DNA from: Gracilinanus agilis
Lineage: Eukaryota
Direction of reading: 5' to 3'
Assembly: GCF_016433145.1 (NCBI RefSeq)
Contig: NC_058135.1
Span: forward strand, 114,845,986-114,909,985
DNA: 64,000 nt
Positions 4,716 to 63,800 of this stretch are shown piece by piece (positions within the stretch are counted from its first letter, which is position 1; every line of letters begins with the position of its first letter). The translations under genes were made by a program, and so were the position numbers. The notes beneath the pieces are model-generated. The model worked only from the letters and a program-made list of their open reading frames with translations. It ran no database searches and was not told where the DNA came from.

Positions 4716-5580
4716 CTCATATGTGCTCCCTTCTCCCTTCTAACACTGCCACCATCTTGGTGGTGGTGTAGGTCCTCATTCTCTCACACCTGTTCTAATA
4801 ATAAGCTGTTGGTTGGTCTGGCTTTAAGTCTCTCCCTACTCTAACCTTTCTTCCATTCAGCTGACAATTTTATTTTCCCAAAGAACGTCTGATTGTTTCA
4901 TTCTTGTTTTCAATCAATGTCATTGGTTCCCTCTCAGGATTCCTATCAACTTCAATGGCTCCAGGATCAAATAGTAAATATTCTATTTGACTCCTAAAGT
5001 TCTCCACAACCTCTACCTTCCAAGACTTCAGAAATCAAATGATTCCCTTGCATTTCTTTGCCCAGAATACTCCATCTCCCTGCTCTATAAATTTATATAG
5101 GCTGCCTCCACACCTGAAACTCTTTCCCTCGTTTTCTCTAATTCCTAGTTCCCTGGCTTCCCTTAAGTCTCAGCTGAAGTCCCACCTTCTACAAGAAGAC
5201 TTCCTGATACTCTTAATGCTAATGTGTNNNNNNNNNNNNNNNNNNNNNNNNNNNNNNNNNNNNNNNNNNNNNNNNNNNNNNNNNNNNNNNNNNNNNNNNN
5301 NNNNNNNNNNNNNNNNNNNNNNNNNNNNNNNNNNNNNNNNNNNNNNNNNNNNNNNNNNNNNNNNNNNNNNNNNNNNNNNNNNNNNNNNNNNNNNNNNNNN
5401 NNNNNNNNNNNNNNGATACCAATCTAAGGATACATAAATAGATATCTATCTTGTTTGTAAATAGTTGTTTGTATTTGTCTCTCCTCTGAGGCAAGCAAGG
5501 ATATTTTGCTTTTCGTCATATTACCACTATTTAGAACAGTCCTTGGCACATAATAAGTGTTGAATAAATGCTAGTTTGCT
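4715..5580 (+). mobile_element. L2 LINE 3' end (spans an assembly gap)
   Basis: 'ttaagtctcagctgaagtcccaccttctacaagaagacttcc' and the terminal 'ttggcacataataagtgttgaataaatgct' match the L2 3' tail. Confidence 0.85.
5228..5414. other. Assembly gap (other gaps: 25370-25521, 38245-38609, 49870-50027)
   Basis: Runs of N. Confidence 0.99.
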
Positions 5581-8756: not shown

Positions 8757-9790
8757 ATGAATTAATGAATCATTTAAGCATTTTTAGCACTCAACTTTGT
8801 CAAAAATACTTTGCTGAGCAAGAGGAATACAAAGACATTGAAGATTGACCTCACTCTCTAGGCAATTGCATTCTAATTGAGTAGACAACAAAAACATTTG
8901 GAAGATTTCATTTGCAAGTCAGATGTCAAGGTGTCTGGGTCCTTGGGGTACAATGACAAAGAAGATGTTAATGGTTCTTTAATGTTACTTTCTATAGATA
9001 CAATAATGTTGGTTTCTGATGTTGAACTAAATGTCTTTGGTGGCCAGAATTTCTTTTTTCCTTATTCAGAGAAGCTGTGACTATAGTTCCTGAAAGAGCC
9101 CTTATAGACTATGTCTCCATAGATGTTACATTTCAGGGTAATGGCTGAAGGCACTAAGCTGGAATTAGTGCTATTCCCAAAGCTCTTGGGTATATGGTCC
9201 AGCCTATCCATCAGAATCTGAGAGAATCTGGTTGTCATGGTAATGATGATGTGGTACATTTGGTACATGCCATTTCTTTCATACTGCCTTGCTGCTTTAG
9301 CTAGATTGGCTTTCCTTCTTTTCCTTTGTGTGGCTGCTGGTTGGCAGTTTATTGGGGGTGTCTAGCCTCTTCTCTCTAAGAGATGCTCCCCTATTTGAAG
9401 GCTCTTTGAGTCAAGCTGGAAACAATACTGGTAGATTGATAGGCACAGGATTCCTGTGCCGATTTGATTATTGGAAACAGCTGATCAGTAGTTGTTGCTG
9501 ATGGTGATGAAGAAAGTAGGTTTCTTCTCTAGAGTGATTTCTCCCTGTCAGTGATGGCTCCTGGGACTCCATTGTAGACAGGTATGATGCTTAGAAGGCT
9601 CTGATATCCTCAAGGGTCTTGGACTTGGGATCCCGAGTTGTCTCCATCAGAGTACAAGGGGAAATAATCAAGGTCATAGTCAAGGTCTGACTTGCCTGGC
9701 ACATGCCACCTCCTGTCTCTCACTCAGGCTACATGAGCCAAACTGGCTTGCCTGCTCTGTATGTGTCAACTCAGATAAGAATCCTGGAAG
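8757..9790 (-). mobile_element. Copy A of a chimeric L2-tailed retroposon carrying a Y-box cold-shock-domain fragment
   Basis: L2 3' tail at ~8757-8890. Minus-strand 9059-9012 = KKEILATKDI*FNIRN (YBX KKVLATKVLGTVKWFNVRN with a 12-nt deletion). Nucleotide homology to 43540-43715. Confidence 0.7.
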
Positions 9791-10039: not shown

Positions 10040-10240
10040 TTTTTTTTAACCTTTCTTTCCATCTTAGAATTAATACAATGTATTGGTTCTAAAGCAGAAG
10101 AGCAGCAAGAGCTAGGCAATGGGGTTTAAGTGACTTGCCCAGGGTCACACAGCTAGGAAGGATGTGAGGCTAGATTGAAACCTAGGACCTTCCATCTCTA
10201 GGCCTGGTTCTCAACTCACTGAGACACTTGCTTCCCCCTA
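10040..10240 (-). mobile_element. SINE1_Mdo-like SINE (older subfamily)
   Basis: 'tattggttctaaagcagaagagcagcaagagctaggcaatggggtttaagtgacttgcccagggtcacacagctagg' preceded by a T-run. Confidence 0.85.
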
Positions 10241-11229
10241 GCCTCTGTATCATTCCTAAAAGCCAGGAATTCTGATAGTTACTTATAAGCCTCTTGGGGT
10301 TTGTTTAAAACAATAAAGAGGATTGCCTAGCAACCTCACATCAAGCTTTTGGTACCCTATTGAAACTTGCATTCCAAGCTACTCTGCACATCTTCACCAG
10401 GATAAAGAAAAAATACTGTATAATCAGAATTAGATCAATGTTCCCCTTCCTGAAATATGTACACCAGACTACACAGTCATCCTAATTGTCATGTGGCTCA
10501 GAACATAGGTTGTCATAAACTCTAAATAATCCCTCTGCATGTTGACAAGCCTATGAGAAAATTCAGCACACTCTCCAAGAAAGCAGTAGAGGTTCCTTCC
10601 CTCTATGGATCAGGGAATATGTTCTTCCTTCACAGCCAGAAAAAAAGAATTATAGGATCATAGGATTTAGAATTGAAATAACCTTAGAGTCCAATTTCTT
10701 CAGTTTAGAGATGTCTCAAAGACATTAAATGATTCAAAGATTTTCATTTTTGTTATTCAAAAAGAGAGACAGTTTAAGTAAGGACAATTTACATTTGCAG
10801 AATACTTTAATGTTTAAAAAAGGACTTTAAAGTTTAAAAAGCTCATATCAACTCTGCAAGGTAGATGGTGGAAGCATCACTGTCTAAATGTAAGAGAAAA
10901 GGAAACACTAATTAAATACCTTGACCATAATCATATATCTAGTAAATTTTAGAGATAAGAATACAGTACATTCCTGACTCCAAAATTATTTTCATCTTTC
11001 ATAAATCTATCAAAACCCATCATCATCATGTTTGGAATCTCTACATGTAGCATTCCTGAAGATTCCAAGAAATATAGCTCCATCTCATCTATCACCTTCC
11101 CACCTTTTTTGAGGATTGGTTACTAAAGACATTAAATTTAAATAATTTGAATAATTTGTCTAGTTTCTTGAAAAATAGAGATTATTTTATGTGCTTTGTC
11201 AGCTCATTAAAAATGAGGATTATATCTCT

Positions 11230-12450
11230 AAGGAGAACATAATTTGGAGAGAAGGAGAGAACATTAATGAATAGGTGCACCAAGAAAGCCTACACCGAGA
11301 AAGTAACACCAGAATTGGGACCTAAAGGTGGTTAAGGATTTTAAGATTCATAAATGAGTAAGAAGGCCATTCTAGGAATGAAGGACAACCTATGCAATAG
11401 AATGGAAACAGAAGATAGTAATGGTAAGGAGGTGATTAGGTGAAATAAAAGTATTTAAAGATAAATAATACAAAATAAGTATAGAAAAGTAGGCTAGCAT
11501 CAGATTGTGAAAATGTAAAGTATTATGCTGGTTTGTGTTTTAACTTGGCTATATTAGGGAACCACTGAAGATTTTTGAGCAGTGAGGTAAAATAGTCAGA
11601 CCTATTCTTAAGGAAGATAATTTTTATAGTTCTGTGGAGGAAAGGTCAGAGAAAAGACCCTAACATAATAAAAAATAATTATTAAATATTGCATAAGTCA
11701 GCTGACTGTTGATGAAGGCCAAAATGGTAGTACTTTATTTGACCGAAGAGAAAAAGAATATGAAAGATATAAAGATGATTGAGATTGAGTTAACAAGATA
11801 CAGAAAATATGAGGTGGTAAAGGTAAAAAAGACAAGATAGTTGAACATGACCCAGAACTTGAGATTACAGGTGAATGAAATGATTAGAATACTTTATCAT
11901 GACCAAGAGGAACCTTCAGAGGCAGGACTGATCTAGCAAGAAAGAAAATGAGTACAATTTTGTACATACCAAGTGGGAGAAGATCAAGTCTAGAAATCTA
12001 GAAGACATTTGAAAATGAAGGACTAGAGCAAAGTAAAATTAGAGCCAGATTTATAACCTTGGGAGTCATTTATATAAAGTTAATACTTGAATTCATGGGA
12101 GCTGATAAGATTACTAAGAGAGCATGTAACAAAACAGAAGCTAGGGCAAAGCTCTGGGTGATGTCCATATTTATTGAGCAGGAGAAGGGTGATCCAGAAA
12201 AAGATGACTGAGAGGGATCATTCAGAAATAAAATAAAAATTAGAAAATAAGTGCTAGAAAAGACAAAGGATGAGAAAGTACTCAAGAAACACAGAAATTG
12301 CAGAAACATCATGATGACTGAGAAAACATCATTGGATTTAGCAATTAAGAGGTCTTTGGTAAATTTGGAGAGGATCATTTCAGTCCAAGGGTGAAGATAA
12401 AACCATATTACAAGGGTTTGAGATGTGAATAAAGAAAAGGAGACAATAAT
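11230..12450 (-). mobile_element. L2 LINE fragment
   Basis: Purine-rich L2 antisense signature, e.g. 'gagaaaacatcattggatttagcaattaagaggtctttggtaaatttggagagg'. Confidence 0.8.
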
Positions 12451-42896: not shown

Positions 42897-43260
42897 CCCT
42901 GATGGCAAACCTATGACACACATGTCAGCACTGACACGTGTAGCCATCTTCGATGACACACGGCCACATACAGACAAGTATGGGGCCACATGCCGAGGCT
43001 GAAACATTTACTGCAGTGTAGTGTAGACACTCTGTGCCAGAGGTCTTTAGACCAAAACAACTGTCCCTAAGCAGGTAAGTTAAATAATTAGATTTTGGTT
43101 TATTAAATACAGTTATATATTACAATTACACATTTTTGTTATTTAAACTATAAATATCATGAAATTATGGGTTTTTTTTCTCGAAGTGACACACCACCTG
43201 AGTTGTGCTCGGTTTTTGGTGAATTTTGACACACCAAGTTCAAAAGGTTGCCTATCACTG
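42897..43260 (+). mobile_element. hAT MITE, family 2 (nhAT1/hAT1-like, 364 bp)
   Basis: TIRs C(CC)TGATGGCAAACC...GGTTGCCTATCACTG. Perfect 8-bp TSD TTCTATGA (42889-96 / 43261-68). Subterminal GACAC repeats. Confidence 0.9.
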
Positions 43261-43329
43261 TTCTATGAGCTACATAGAGAACATGGAACAAAATATAGAA
43301 CAAATTTGTAAAGATCAAAGAGTCTATAC

Positions 43330-43490
43330 CAGTGATGGGCAAACTATGGCCTGAGGCCAGATGCGGCCCCTTAAATGTTCTATCTGCTGTACAGGATACA
43401 ATACAATGAAACTTTGAAAGAGCTGTCTTAGAAAGAGACTGACAGATGAGCATTTCCTTTGGCCCCTCTTTAAAAAGTTTGCCTATCCTA
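43330..43490 (+). mobile_element. hAT MITE, family 1, internally deleted copy
   Basis: Left TIR CAGTGATGGGCAAACT after GTCTATAC. The right TIR is degenerate (AGTTTGCCTATCCTA) and the right TSD is only partly matching (GTCCTTGC). Confidence 0.85.
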
Positions 43491-44750
43491 GTCCTTGCTT
43501 TTAAGGAGCTCGCATTCTAATAGGGAGAGATAATACCTATAGGTTTTAGGTGTAAATCAAATGGAAAGGTCCTATGGTCCTTAGGATGTGTGGACAAAGG
43601 AGAGAAGGCTTCATCTTTAATGTAATCTCCACTTACAAGAAACCTATCTGTTCTAATGTTGAACCATTTAACAACGCCAAGTATTTTGCTGCTGAGAATT
43701 TTCTTTTCCGAATGATCAAGTCGCAGAGGCCACTAGTGAGGTAGAGGCTGCATCACTTGAGGAGGAAATAGCCAGGTCTCACACCCATAAAAGATGCTTC
43801 CCTAGTTGATGATGGGGGGAGGAAGGTGGAAGAAGCACTGTAAGTGATCCAGTGTCTCTCAGGGGAACTGGTTTAACTTTCCTGGCACCATCAGCCTCTT
43901 GTTTCTGCTACAGGGTACCTTATTATTTCATGAAGTAAAGCAAGAGCAGTAGTTCTCCTCAACTCGTCTTCTCAAACTGGGAGTAGATTTTCTCTTCCCT
44001 ATTTCCCCAGGAACATCTTTACCAGTTCAATGGGGCTTCCCAGATCTTCCATCCTTTTGGAGTTTAAGAGGCCATCTCTCAATCCTTATTAATGAGGAAA
44101 ATAATAATTATATCATTCTCCTCTTCCCTCCACATAGAGCACTTCTATGGCAGAAGTCCTTTGCTGGATTTGACCACTGACATCCCTTGTCACACATAAG
44201 CCCAGAGATATATCCAATTCTTTTAGTCACTTATTGTGTGACACTTTTTGTGTGATGTAGTATGTCATCATCCATTGATCAAAGAACTTCACATCTTTCA
44301 AATTGATTGAAGACTTGTTCACATCTAGTTTTTTTATAATAACCTTGATTGATGCAATCCAGCAGCTATCTGGGTCTTCTGTTAACATATTAATGATGGT
44401 GAAAGTTCAAAATCTCCATGTTCTTACATATGCATGAGCTACTTATACAATTACAATATTTACTGGTATATTTGCCTAAATTAGTATTGATTTCCCTCAG
44501 CATGGAGTATTCATAAAAAATGGAAGTAATACACTGATCAAAAATGTCATTGTCCCTACTAGCTACCAGATCCCTAGAGCTGATAGCAGCAACAATTGAA
44601 TCTAGTGAGGATCCAGTAAGGCCACCAGGTACCTTGGTCAACCCCAGAAGTGGACTGACTGCATTACCAATAACACCATGTTTGATAAGTTAATTCAGCT
44701 TAGTAAGAGATTAACTAACTCATCCTTCAGCAATGCCATGCTCAGAAGTG
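43491..44750 (-). mobile_element. Copy B of the chimeric L2-tailed retroposon with a Y-box cold-shock-domain fragment and upstream ORF-like sequence
   Basis: L2 tail remnant 'aaggagctcgcattctaatagggagagataata' (43503-35). Minus-strand 43708-43652 = EKKILSSKILGVVKWFNIR (13/19 identical to YBX3 [19 protein letters not shown]). Confidence 0.75.
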
Positions 44751-44769: not shown

Positions 44770-45030
44770 GAAGTGAGATGGGACAGCTAGATATCTTGGT
44801 GCATAGAATATTGGCCTCAGTTGGAATCAAAAAGATCTGAGTTCAAAGCTGGCCTCCAGCACTTATTAACTGTGTGACCCTGGGCAAGTCACTTACTCCT
44901 ATTCAATTCAATTTCCCTATATGTAAAAAGAGCTCAAGAAGTAAATGGCAAAACAATCTACTATTTTTGCCAAGAAAACCTAAATGGGGTCACAAAAAGT
45001 GAGAAAACTGAAACAACTGAACAACAAATA
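44770..45030 (+). mobile_element. Mar1-type CORE-SINE
   Basis: CORE 'tgtgtgaccctgggcaagtcactt' plus tail 'aaatggcaaaacaatctactatttttgccaagaaaacc...ctgaaacaactgaacaacaa'. Confidence 0.85.
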
Positions 45031-57950: not shown

Positions 57951-60179
57951 TGACTTTTCTTCTCTACAAAGTTTTATGATTCTTTTAAAAAGTGCTGAGG
58001 CAAATGCTTGAGCTTTTTCTTATATACTAAACCTTATCTCTATTTCCAAACTATCTCAAGCAAAAGAAAGAGAGAGGGTATATAACACACAAGAGAAGAG
58101 GCACCAGCCACAGCTGGGATCATAAAGTATGGCTTCTTAATCCTTTGTGGGGGTCCTGGACCTTTTTGGGTGTCCAGTGAAGTTTTTTGGGGGGGTCTTC
58201 TTAGTTTCACATTTATTGCCTATATTCATAATTGAAAATCTCAATTTTGGTTAAAGATTAGAGAAAAAAAAGATGTATTTTTTTCCCATCCAATGTCATG
58301 GAACTTCTGAAATCTATTGATCCTGGGATTAAGATACCTTGTTATGGAGTCATGGACATTGGGAATCTTGAAGGTTAAAAGGTAACTTAGAGAGCAACTC
58401 GTCCTGCCTCCTTCCAGTTGGGAAGGATCACAAACATTTTATTTAGCATCTGCTATGCCCAACCATGTTCCAGACATTATATTAAGAGTTTTAGAAATAT
58501 CTCATTGGATTCTCACAACAACTTTTGGAGGTTGGTGCTATTATTATCCTCATTCTATAGTTGAGGAAACTGAGGCACTCAGAGGCTAAATGACTTGTCT
58601 GTGGTCACATAGCTAGTAAGTGTCAGAGGCTGGATTTGAAGTCAAGTCTTCTGAAACCAGACCCAGTGCTTTATCCACTCTACCACCTAACTGCCAGTTG
58701 GCTCCAAATGTAGAAATCTTCTTGACAATATCTCTTCTAGAGGCCCATTCAGCCTTTGACAGGTCACTTGGTGTTTCCAAGGACCTCTCAGCTTTGCCTC
58801 CATTTAAATTTTGTCTGCTAGAGTGCTTAGAAAGTTCCTTCTTATCTTGAGGTGATATTTACTCTTTCATAAGCTCAATCCATTGTTCCTATTCGTGATC
58901 TCAGAAGTGAACCAGGAAAAGCAATATTTATTAAGTGCTTACTGTGTGCAGAACACTGTGCTAGGAACTGAAGGAGATAAAAGCTTAGAGAAGATACGGT
59001 CAGTGCTCTCATCTGGAGAAGTGCGGTGCTGGTTACAATCTTTGATACTTACTACCTGTGTGACCATGGGCAGCTCACCAGCCGAGGGTCTCCGTTTTGC
59101 AATTTGTACACTAAGAGGGTTGGACTAAGTGGATTTTCAGATCCTTTCTAACCCTAAATCTATTGCCCTAAGAAAATAACTACAAATAATGTGATAAATA
59201 TAGTATAAAGTTGCAAAATATGGTGTTAGATGAGGTCTTGGGGAAGATTTGATACTAAGCATAGCTAAGAATTCATTTCCTCTCTGGTCTTCCACAATTT
59301 CCTTCTACCACCCAAATCTCTTTATTTTACCTCTAAAACATACATGAGAAACTCTGATTCATAGGCATGAACTAGTTATACATACATTAAAGTTCCCTAA
59401 ACAAGAACTTCATCTCCCCTATAATATTTAACATTCCTTAAGAGCATGGACTATGTCATGTTTCACCGTTGTGTCCACAGTGTCTAGCTAGCACAGTAGC
59501 TGGCACATAACTAACACATAATGAATTTTTGTTGAATGGATAAATGAATGAATAAATGTCATGGGAGGAAAAATGATGACATAAAAAGATAATTAGTCAA
59601 AATATCAATTTTGAATATTTTTGAGGCACCAGAACATGATTTTTTGAAGTTTGGACTTCAAATAAAGGACAATGATAGGATGGCCATGACTTTATACCAA
59701 GATGTTTTCATATGTCTACTTCTGCTTCTGCCTCTGCATAGAAAATAAATAGTTAGAGTCAGGTTAAAGGGAAAAGCAATACAGAGATGAAAGACTTAAA
59801 AGCATTTTCATATAAGGACCGATATTTTCAATCTTAATGTGGATTAGAGAATAGAGAAGGTTAGATGATGGTCATATTTAATTGAAGAAAGATTAGAAAC
59901 AGCACGGCAACCAGTCTCATCATACTTAAACATGCAGTAAAATATAGGCATCGGTGGTGAATGGGGACGAATATTAGGGTATCTATCTAACTCAATAAGT
60001 TGTATCCAATAATTATAATAGTTAACATTTATACAGCACTTTAAGGTTTGCAAAACACTCTTCATGTAATCTAATTTGTACTAAATCCAAACTGCTGATT
60101 TAATCTAAACTGTACTAAATCTCGTCATTTAGTACAGTTTATTTTAAATATATGCACTTTTGAGATTGAGTGATCCTGT

Positions 60180-60847: not shown

Positions 60848-63800
60848 CCAATACCAGCCTCAGAGATGAGAAGTGCCTCACATCATTTCATGCATGATAT
60901 GGCAAACCATGGAACCTTCTTGATCCTCATGTTCATCATCTATAAAATGGGTTGGTACCTCACAAAACTGCTGATAGGGTCAAATTAAATAATTCACAAA
61001 CCATAAAAAACTACATAGAAGTAACATTTGTTATTATTAATTATATATTTTTGCTAATAGAATGATTCCATAACTTACCTTAAGTTTTATGCATTACAAT
61101 AATTTGTAGCACATACAATGTATTATGGAATAAATTACTTGGGCTATTACAATAGTATCTTCTATGTGTTAAAGGAAGCCTCTACTAAAGTCTTCTTCCA
61201 ATGCCTCATCATGGGGTGAAGTTAAGCCAAAAGGGCATAAATTCTCCAGTCCTCAAGTCAGAGGACTTGTACTCAAATACTTCCTTTGATGCAGAATAAT
61301 GAATTTTTTGGGAAAATTATTAAAATTCCCTGGACCTTACTTTTCTCATCTGTAAAATAAGGATGTTAAACTAGATCCAATATCTAGATTGGATCTAGTT
61401 GGACCAGTCAGTAGGTCTAGTCCCCACCTAGCTGAGGTCCCTCCCGATTCTAGTCCACTTCTTGTCTATAATGTTCTGGTAGGAAGCACCAAGTCAGAAA
61501 ATTTTCAAATTTACCCAGGGACAAGACTGTTTGTTGTCTGAGGACCAAGTATTATTAGTTCAGAGATATTCATCACTAGAAATCTCCAAGGTGCTATTCC
61601 TGATGTTATTGTTGTTGTTTTGTTTTGCTACAATAATTCATGAACACTCCTAAAGTGTTGAAGAGTTATTACCTGTTTCTCACAAATGAAATCATGATTC
61701 TTTTGCTACACTGAAGTAAATTAAACATTATACATTAAATGTTATGATTCTTTGGGCTTGAGGGCAGTTAGGTAGCTCAGTGGATAGAGAGCCAAGCCTG
61801 GGGATGGGAATTCTTGAGTTTTGTAACATTGGACAAGTGACTTAACCCCCCCCCACCCCCATTGCCCAGTCCTTACCATTATCCTGCCTTGGGACCAATA
61901 CACAGTATTTATTCTAAGATGGAAGGTAATTGTTAAAAAAAATTCCATGGGTTCACACACAGACACATATACACGTACATAAATAAATGATAAACTTACA
62001 AGTTGTCAGAGTGGGAACCAATAAATTTACCATGACTTATGGTTCCACATTTTTTCCTACTATTAGTCTACATATTTCCAGAAGGATATTTCTAATGTCC
62101 AATTTCTTGCATGACAAATATTTGACACTTCAAACTGTTAGTTACACAAAGGACCAATGTTGTACTTTGTTGAGACAGATGGACTGAAATATTATATCAG
62201 CCCTAATTAGTAATGGAAAGAACAAGTCTTTCCTTTCATAGTCCTAAAGGCTGCAGACATGCATCCTGATGAATGCTACGGTCTAAACTCTACAAGTATG
62301 TTTTTAAGCATTGGTTGGACATGATCACATGTTTTTATTACTCAGGCTCATCAAAATATTTTTGAATTGCTCTGTAAACATGGATTAGTTTATTTGGCTA
62401 ATTACCTTTTAGAAATTAAATATCTTCTGAGGCATCTTCATATCCATTTAGACATGAAATGGCAGTTGTCTATACATGGATCATCATCATTGAGAGTTTA
62501 TCCCTACTTAATATACAACTACAATGCATTAAATATGAATAAACTTTGAAAATAACTGAGCAAATCATTGACATATGTTTGCTACAAGAATTAATTCATC
62601 AGTATATATGCATATTGTTTTTATCTCCTCCCCCTTTTAAAGCACTTAAAACCTTTTATTGTTTCAGTCTTGATTTCAACACTGTTGTGAACTCCCAAAG
62701 GCAAATTTCCCTCCACTAATAAATATAGGCGACTCCTTTATAACTTCCTATGGCAGGGAAAGTAACTTCCCCACTGTTCCATAGCTAATATTCATCAGAA
62801 GCATAACTTGAAGTTAGGTCTTCCTGAATTTATGGCAAGCCCTCTTTTCAAATATCTACCTCTTTTCTTTCCTTTATCAAAATACTTTCCATTATTTTTA
62901 AAAGGATATTTTTGAGCCACAAACATTACTTACTGTCAATAAATTCTATTTGTATGTATCTATATAACACTGGTGAACTGGTATTTGTGTTTTGAAATTT
63001 TTATTTGTCATAAGCATAATCTTATATACTACAAGTCAAAACAATAGACATGTAAGAGAGACTATTTTAAAGACCACTGAAAACAATTTTTCACTCTACA
63101 TCACTCATATGTGATTTGGAGAACAAATTTATACTTTTAAATAGCAAAAAAAAATTCTTTTCTCTCTCTATTCACCCCCACTGGGTGGAGGGGATGAGAA
63201 CTCTTATAACAAATAAGCATAGCCAAGCAAAATTAATTCCCATATTAGCCTCACCCAGAAATGAAATTCTCATTCTTTATATTAACCCATCACCACCACC
63301 ATGAGGACAATATTCTTACTCTTTGGTCTTCTAGAATAATTTCATTGGTTGATAATTATTTGTTTTTACAATATTGATTTTATAACATAAGTTGTTCTCT
63401 TGGTTTTGCTAATTTCTCTCCATGTTCCAGTTTCTGAAACCATTCTTTCTTCATTTCTTACAGCAAAAAATTATTCCATTATATCCATACATGATAATTT
63501 GTTCATCTAATTCCCCTAATTGAGAGTTACTCCTTCCAAAATTAAAGAAAATACAAGAATAGATTGATAATCAGCTTTTTAGTGGCAAATAATATCTATA
63601 TTAAGGTAAACTTCAGGAGAAAGACAATCTATTGAATAATCTACTTATTCTGCTTAATCTACTTATACTATATTGAAATTTTAGCCTTTCCATACTTTTC
63701 CTGGCTTCAGTATATACAGAGAACAGGTGGTCACTGTCCTTAATAAGAATAATTCCTCAGGAAATGGAACATTCTACCAAATATGATTTAAGTGACTCAG

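Follow-up and report, generated by a model that had tools for sequence, protein, structure and literature searches.

A minus-strand segment of the window, by which we mean the whole 64-kb stretch of DNA analysed here, raises the question of how a run of cold-shock-domain (CSD) codons came to precede the 3′ end of an L2 retrotransposon. A preliminary description had read KKEILATKDI*FNIRN from positions 9059-9012 and had taken the segment (copy A) for a second, independent copy of a CSD-L2 junction seen elsewhere in the window (copy B); the reading was reproduced by translation of the minus strand. We think it likely that copy A belongs to a dispersed family of non-autonomous Y-box/L2 chimeric retroposons in a marsupial (opossum-type) genome, as a decayed member with an insertion event of its own. 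The coordinates of the unit, its parts, and the element that interrupts copy B are collected in Table 1.

Table 1. Positions in the window of the two copies of the Y-box/L2 unit, the parts of copy A, and the element lying within the tail of copy B.
Feature	Positions	Strand	Evidence
Copy A, whole shared unit (predicted Y-box mRNA fragment and L2-type 3′ end)	8757..9072	minus	blastn, nhmmer, alignment to copy B
Decayed Y-box (cold-shock-domain) part of copy A	8972..9062	minus	translation; colinear with EKKVLATKDLGTIKKFNSKNEYDFISGNDIKE of L001
"Linker" of copy A, after the clear Y-box part and before the clear L2 tail	8895..8971	minus	family-specific sequence
L2-type 3′ tail of copy A (..TTAGAATG....AAATG.TTCATTAA end)	8757..8894	minus	matches to tails in the window; L001
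Copy B, same Y-box/L2 unit	43491..43718	minus	YB-1 match; blastn and nhmmer with L001
Small inverted-repeat element inside the L2 tail of copy B	43327..43490		inverted repeat I3, 43334-43345 / 43476-43487

Local alignment placed A 9027-8849 against B 43664-43493 at 61.5% identity over 182 columns, with a score of 30 against 12.0 ± 1.5 (maximum 18) for 300 dinucleotide shuffles (z = 12), and blastn over the whole window recovered the same pair at E = 3e-7; no further copy was found in the 64-kb window by blastn or with a profile built from A and B. A third copy lies on L001, a 1571-nt Logan contig unrelated to the window, of which positions 1127-1451 matched A 9072-8758 (62.6%, 334 columns, blastn E = 1e-23) and positions 1131-1358 matched B 43718-43490 (69.5%, 236 columns, blastn E = 3e-26). 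Searches by nhmmer with L001 gave 1.6e-19 for copy A and 6.8e-20 for copy B. The claim that the window holds a second copy of the junction is therefore upheld both by the A/B alignment, which is significant against shuffled controls, and by the match of copy A to L001.

All of the pairwise matches share a 5′ limit about 12 nt ahead of the EKK codons, and the match between copy A and L001 stops 3′ where the L2 tail stops (8758 / 1451). Copy A is a discrete element of ~315 nt that runs from 9072 to 8758 on the minus strand. The repeat unit as a whole is likewise discrete, measures about 315-325 nt, and has one internal junction, which is shared by three unrelated loci. Upstream flanks, taken from 170 to about 740 nt 5′ of the EKK codons, gave nothing above shuffles for any pair of copies in shuffle-controlled local alignments (z of 0.4, 0.8, and 1.7; p about 0.4-0.5), tblastx upstream of the unit found no match, and the comparison of 8757-9790 with 43491-44750 that the preliminary description had suggested yielded nothing beyond the ~315-325-nt unit. 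The sole other blast match between the A and B regions (84%, 51 nt, opposite strands) is explained by copies of a marsupial tRNA-derived SINE (..ctgtgtgaccctgggcaagtcacttaa..) at ~10080-10270 (minus) and ~44790-44900. Directly upstream of copy A, 9120-9340 is repetitive too: 9134-9191 and 9275-9305 were matched at 80% identity or more by several other contigs of the sequencing run described below (run X1), with clipped ends unlike A, and this repeat returned no Pfam family and matched neither L001 nor the L2 in the window. Open frames upstream of copies A and B (9065-9361, 44393-44689, and others) had no Pfam family either, and a gag-like or ORF1 body in that region gained no support.

Over the shared core, K2P distances were 0.39 (L001-A), 0.45 (L001-B), and 0.58 (A-B), with branches to the common node of about 0.26 for A, 0.32 for B, and 0.13 for L001. 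Divergence is similar in the Y-box and non-Y-box halves, which argues for descent of the two as one unit. These data fit very old, separate insertions of one unit, the age being judged from the divergence, and they agree with the earlier description of ancient, independent insertions rather than a recent duplication, inasmuch as homology stops at the ends of the unit and the flanks are at shuffle level.

The kinship with Y-box proteins was established through copy B and L001. Copy B has an open frame of 71 codons (43732-43520) that reads ..EKKILSSKILGVVKWFNIRT.. and matched the cold-shock-domain structures of YB-1 and YBX2 with a best E of 5.8e-5 (YB-1). An exhaustive phmmer search with copy B as the query brought up one closer relative, P0001, an 88-aa protein encoded by L001 (E = 1e-7), and besides it only two invertebrate multi-CSD proteins; in tblastn, multi-CSD proteins matched L001 and copy B, with E values of 3e-8 and 9e-8. 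Word-index protein searches with copy B, P0001, or the reverse-transcriptase piece of L001 as queries found only P0001 itself. L001 is the best preserved of the three copies, reading ..EKKVLATKDLGTIKKFNSKNEYDFISGNDIKE.. and then an L2-type tail, and its open frame matched the YB-1/YBX2 cold-shock-domain structures at E = 9.5e-7 to 1.3e-5. Against the Pfam CSD family (PF00313), L001 scored 12.1 bits, below the cut-off of 27, and the gathering score was reached by none of copy A, copy B, and L001. Because only about the N-terminal half of the domain is present, we regard the sequence as a fragment and not as a cold-shock-domain gene. Pfam gave no match for copy B or copy A, Rfam gave nothing meaningful for copy A and L001, and copy A by itself had no significant protein match; copy A is too broken for such a match, so its Y-box derivation is drawn from DNA homology to L001 and copy B and is secure by transitivity only. 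A stretch upstream in L001 ("SLAAAP..") that looks like the N-terminus of YBX3 was dropped as a candidate, being absent from copies A and B. At 960-1000, between its reverse-transcriptase fragment and the Y-box unit, L001 also has a near-palindromic stretch (ggtgttaccatgtttaccatggtaacaacc).

Copy A translates as (E)KKEILATKDI*FNIRN..I.R..NIKE and is damaged by frameshifts, a stop, and a deletion of 12 nt. The deletion was placed by nhmmer between 9031 and 9030, the stop is the TAG at 9029-9027, where the same codon is TGG in copy B and AAG in L001, and one nucleotide is inserted at 8988. How other members of the family read at these points was seen in contigs of one sequencing run (run X1), aligned to copy A at an identity of at least 80%. 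One of these contigs is the copy A locus itself (8 differences in 876 nt), about 12 others stack on 8969-9027, and 6-8 stack on 8903-8964. Clipped ends of the other copies read ..ACTGTCAAATG|GTTCAAC.., which gives TVKWFN, and ..ATTAAAGAAGA(C/T)GTA.., which gives IKEDV; the base inserted at 8988 is absent from one contig, and plus-strand position 9001 is C in copy A and A in 12 other contigs. From the clipped ends it follows that the 12-nt deletion, the TAG, the extra base at 8988, and the base at 9001 are private decay of copy A, and that TGG is the ancestral codon at the position of the TAG.

Several details of the preliminary description are settled by these readings. The loss of GTVK and the change of TGG to TAG both stand, and the proposal that the copies supplement one another in pointing back to a Y-box-like ancestor is borne out by L001 and the clipped ends, which restore EKKVLATK..TVKWFN..NDIKEDV. 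The end that it set for the Y-box sequence at 8975 had to be moved, since other copies read IKEDV and the Y-box part extends a few codons past that position. From the pile-up of this one run, we would guess that the family has some hundreds to thousands of copies. When metagenomes were scanned with a family pattern of 25 bases, there were 0 matches. All of the family copies seen are neutral relics, and copy A is a dead, very old one with no sign of a present function. No direct repeat (target-site duplication) is visible at the ends of copy A, the copies being heavily decayed.

Within the unit, the Y-box fragment lies 5′ and the L2 3′ end (the last 200 nt or so) lies 3′, both in the same direction. 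The Y-box head opens a few codons ahead of "EKKVLATK", ends at about "NDTKEDV", and comprises about 35-40 codons. In human YB-1, exon 1 encodes the 55-residue A/P domain, and the primers used for that gene assign NVRNGYGFI to exon 2 and DTKEDVFVH to exon 3 (PMC4130533). The unit is colinear with this arrangement and free of introns across both the exon 1/2 and the exon 2/3 junctions (EKKV|LATK..GFI|..NDTKE), so the head would take in exon 2 together with the last part of exon 1 and the first part of exon 3 and would derive from a spliced mRNA, on the assumption that the exon structure of YB-1 is conserved in the marsupial donor gene. The string "EKKVLATK" looks YBX3-like, and this paralogue, rather than YBX1 or YBX2, may be the donor.

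The stretch of 84 nt that follows the clear Y-box part had been described as a linker, and its strings in copies A and B as colinear. Colinearity was seen in the A/B alignment, and the stretch is conserved in copies A, B, and L001 (e.g., CC.AAGGACC, ACCTT, and CAT.TGA.TT.CA). It is no mere linker: the contigs stacked on 8903-8964 show that it belongs to the repeated unit, its start reads as Y-box codons (EDV in other copies) rather than as neutral spacer, and the rest is family-specific. This remainder is probably L2 3′ UTR, and the Y-box/L2 junction in copy A would lie somewhere between about 8965 and 8900. The tail that follows resembles those of L2-type elements, judging from its likeness to other tails in the window: A 8800-8833 matches 62365-62332 (82% over 34 nt, E = 0.001), and the tail of L001 matches 59011-58925, which is of L2/MIR type (E = 9e-4), as well as 5492-5571. 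The stretches at 58925-59180 (minus), 5492-5571, and 62332-62365 are MIR/L2-type 3′ tails of other old repeats, and the first of them looks like a MIR-type SINE.

In copy B, the tail is cut at 43490 by an element of ~160 nt with 12-nt terminal inverted repeats (GATGGGCAAACT / AGTTTGCCTATC) and TA on each side, which looks like a Tc1/mariner-type MITE; an end motif akin to that of the element (cagtgataggcaa) recurs at ~43250-43265. Beyond the element, the tail of copy B probably resumes from 43326 to ~43250, where the sequence is colinear with L001 1358-1401 at a similarity that is not significant when taken alone (p about 0.12).

A different origin would follow if the Y-box codons were an in-frame patch in a longer L2 subfamily, in place of part of the C-terminus of ORF2, with copies A and B being 5′-truncated L2 elements. 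L001 lends this reading some substance, given that an L2-like reverse-transcriptase fragment precedes the unit on the same strand (446-917), matches the repeat at 12232-11736 of the window (nhmmer E = 1.4e-12), and has RVT_1 clusters as 27 of its 30 Atlas neighbours, and that the frame of L001 is open from upstream into the Y-box part; L2-ORF2-like motifs were also read by eye upstream of copies A and B. A single L2 subfamily would, however, predict upstream parts at 60-70% similarity, like the unit, whereas upstream of the EKK codons no significant sequence was common to any pair of copies, the reverse-transcriptase part of L001 and a two-sequence L2 profile found no match upstream of copies A or B, and L001 900-1140 gave no alignment with the L2 in the window. 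With no upstream support from blastn, tblastx, nhmmer, the profile, or the shuffled alignments, an origin inside ORF2 was demoted, and we hold it to be unlikely. The window repeat matched by L001 belongs to a separate, decayed L2-like element (11736-12232, minus, probably reaching to about 11200) that includes a reverse-transcriptase region and reads ..LYIND.. in place of YADD; it is no part of copy A.

Two other explanations would do without a family altogether. Copies A and B lie 34 kb apart in one window and on the same strand, as they might if an ancient local (segmental) duplication had doubled a single insertion, but their flanks are unrelated on both sides at a sensitivity that detects the unit, a third copy sits on an unrelated contig and about 12 more contigs carry the unit, and copy B is nearer to L001 than to copy A. 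Since the flanks have no similarity above shuffles, the insertions are best taken as separate and a segmental duplication as excluded; we give this explanation very little probability. Processed pseudogenes of Y-box genes are numerous in mammals, and copy A taken by itself matches no protein significantly, so that one might think of an ordinary Y-box processed pseudogene beside an unrelated L2 fragment, or of a chance resemblance. Such readings are refuted by the A/B z of 12, the A/L001 E of 1e-23, and the ~12 run X1 contigs; moreover, all copies have one and the same junction, a poly(A) is lacking, and the Y-box sequence stops at about 40 codons. We therefore attach next to no weight to them.

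For the dispersed chimeric family that we favour, the most economical origin would be as follows. An L2 reverse transcriptase would have started on L2 RNA by target-primed reverse transcription and then changed over to an abundant Y-box mRNA as its template, and cDNA synthesis would have halted or been truncated soon after entering exon 1, leaving one chimeric copy. Because transcripts of this chimera would have kept the L2 3′ end that L2 enzymes recognise, they could have been recopied in trans to many places. It is also conceivable, if very doubtful, that the founder expressed a peptide or RNA with the RNP1-bearing half of the cold-shock domain that aided its own L2-dependent mobilisation; were this so, a captured host gene would have supplied a "half-L2" with its analogue of an ORF1 protein.

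The practical import of copy A, as a neutral relic, is modest. L2 counts as a "stringent" LINE, copying no RNAs but those with its own 3′ end, and few of its products are known besides MIR-type SINEs. A multi-copy family with a head from spliced coding mRNA would demonstrate that template switches of the L2 reverse transcriptase reached cellular mRNAs and that a chimera of this kind could grow into a repeat family of its own, and the family could serve marsupial phylogeny as an old presence/absence marker.

Chimeras formed by LINE template switching are known from U6-L1 (PMC4476161) and from bi- and tripartite chimeric pseudogenes (PMC2104539). The Y-box/L2 unit is like them in joining two RNA-derived parts head to tail in one orientation with the LINE 3′ end last, and in having a 5′ part from an abundant cellular RNA, in the Y-box case from a spliced mRNA. 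Known chimeras are mostly single-copy and were made by L1 or fungal LINEs, whereas here the enzyme would be that of L2 and the chimera has multiplied as a family. With Y-box processed pseudogenes, the unit shares a spliced Y-box mRNA as its probable source; unlike them, it holds about 35-40 codons, ends within exon 3 with no 3′ UTR or poly(A), finishes in an L2 tail, and occurs in the same truncated form at many loci. Retroposons that end in the tail of a LINE include the MIR/CORE-SINEs, which have L2 tails, and the platypus snoRNA-RTE. A LINE-tailed SINE of de novo origin is found in passerines, where TguSINE1 has a CR1 tail (PMC5729268). As in such SINEs, a short non-autonomous unit carries the tail of its partner LINE at the 3′ end, would borrow its reverse transcriptase, and is present as dispersed copies with unrelated flanks; in contrast to their tRNA, 5S, or snoRNA heads with an own polymerase III promoter, the head of the present unit consists of cold-shock-domain codons.
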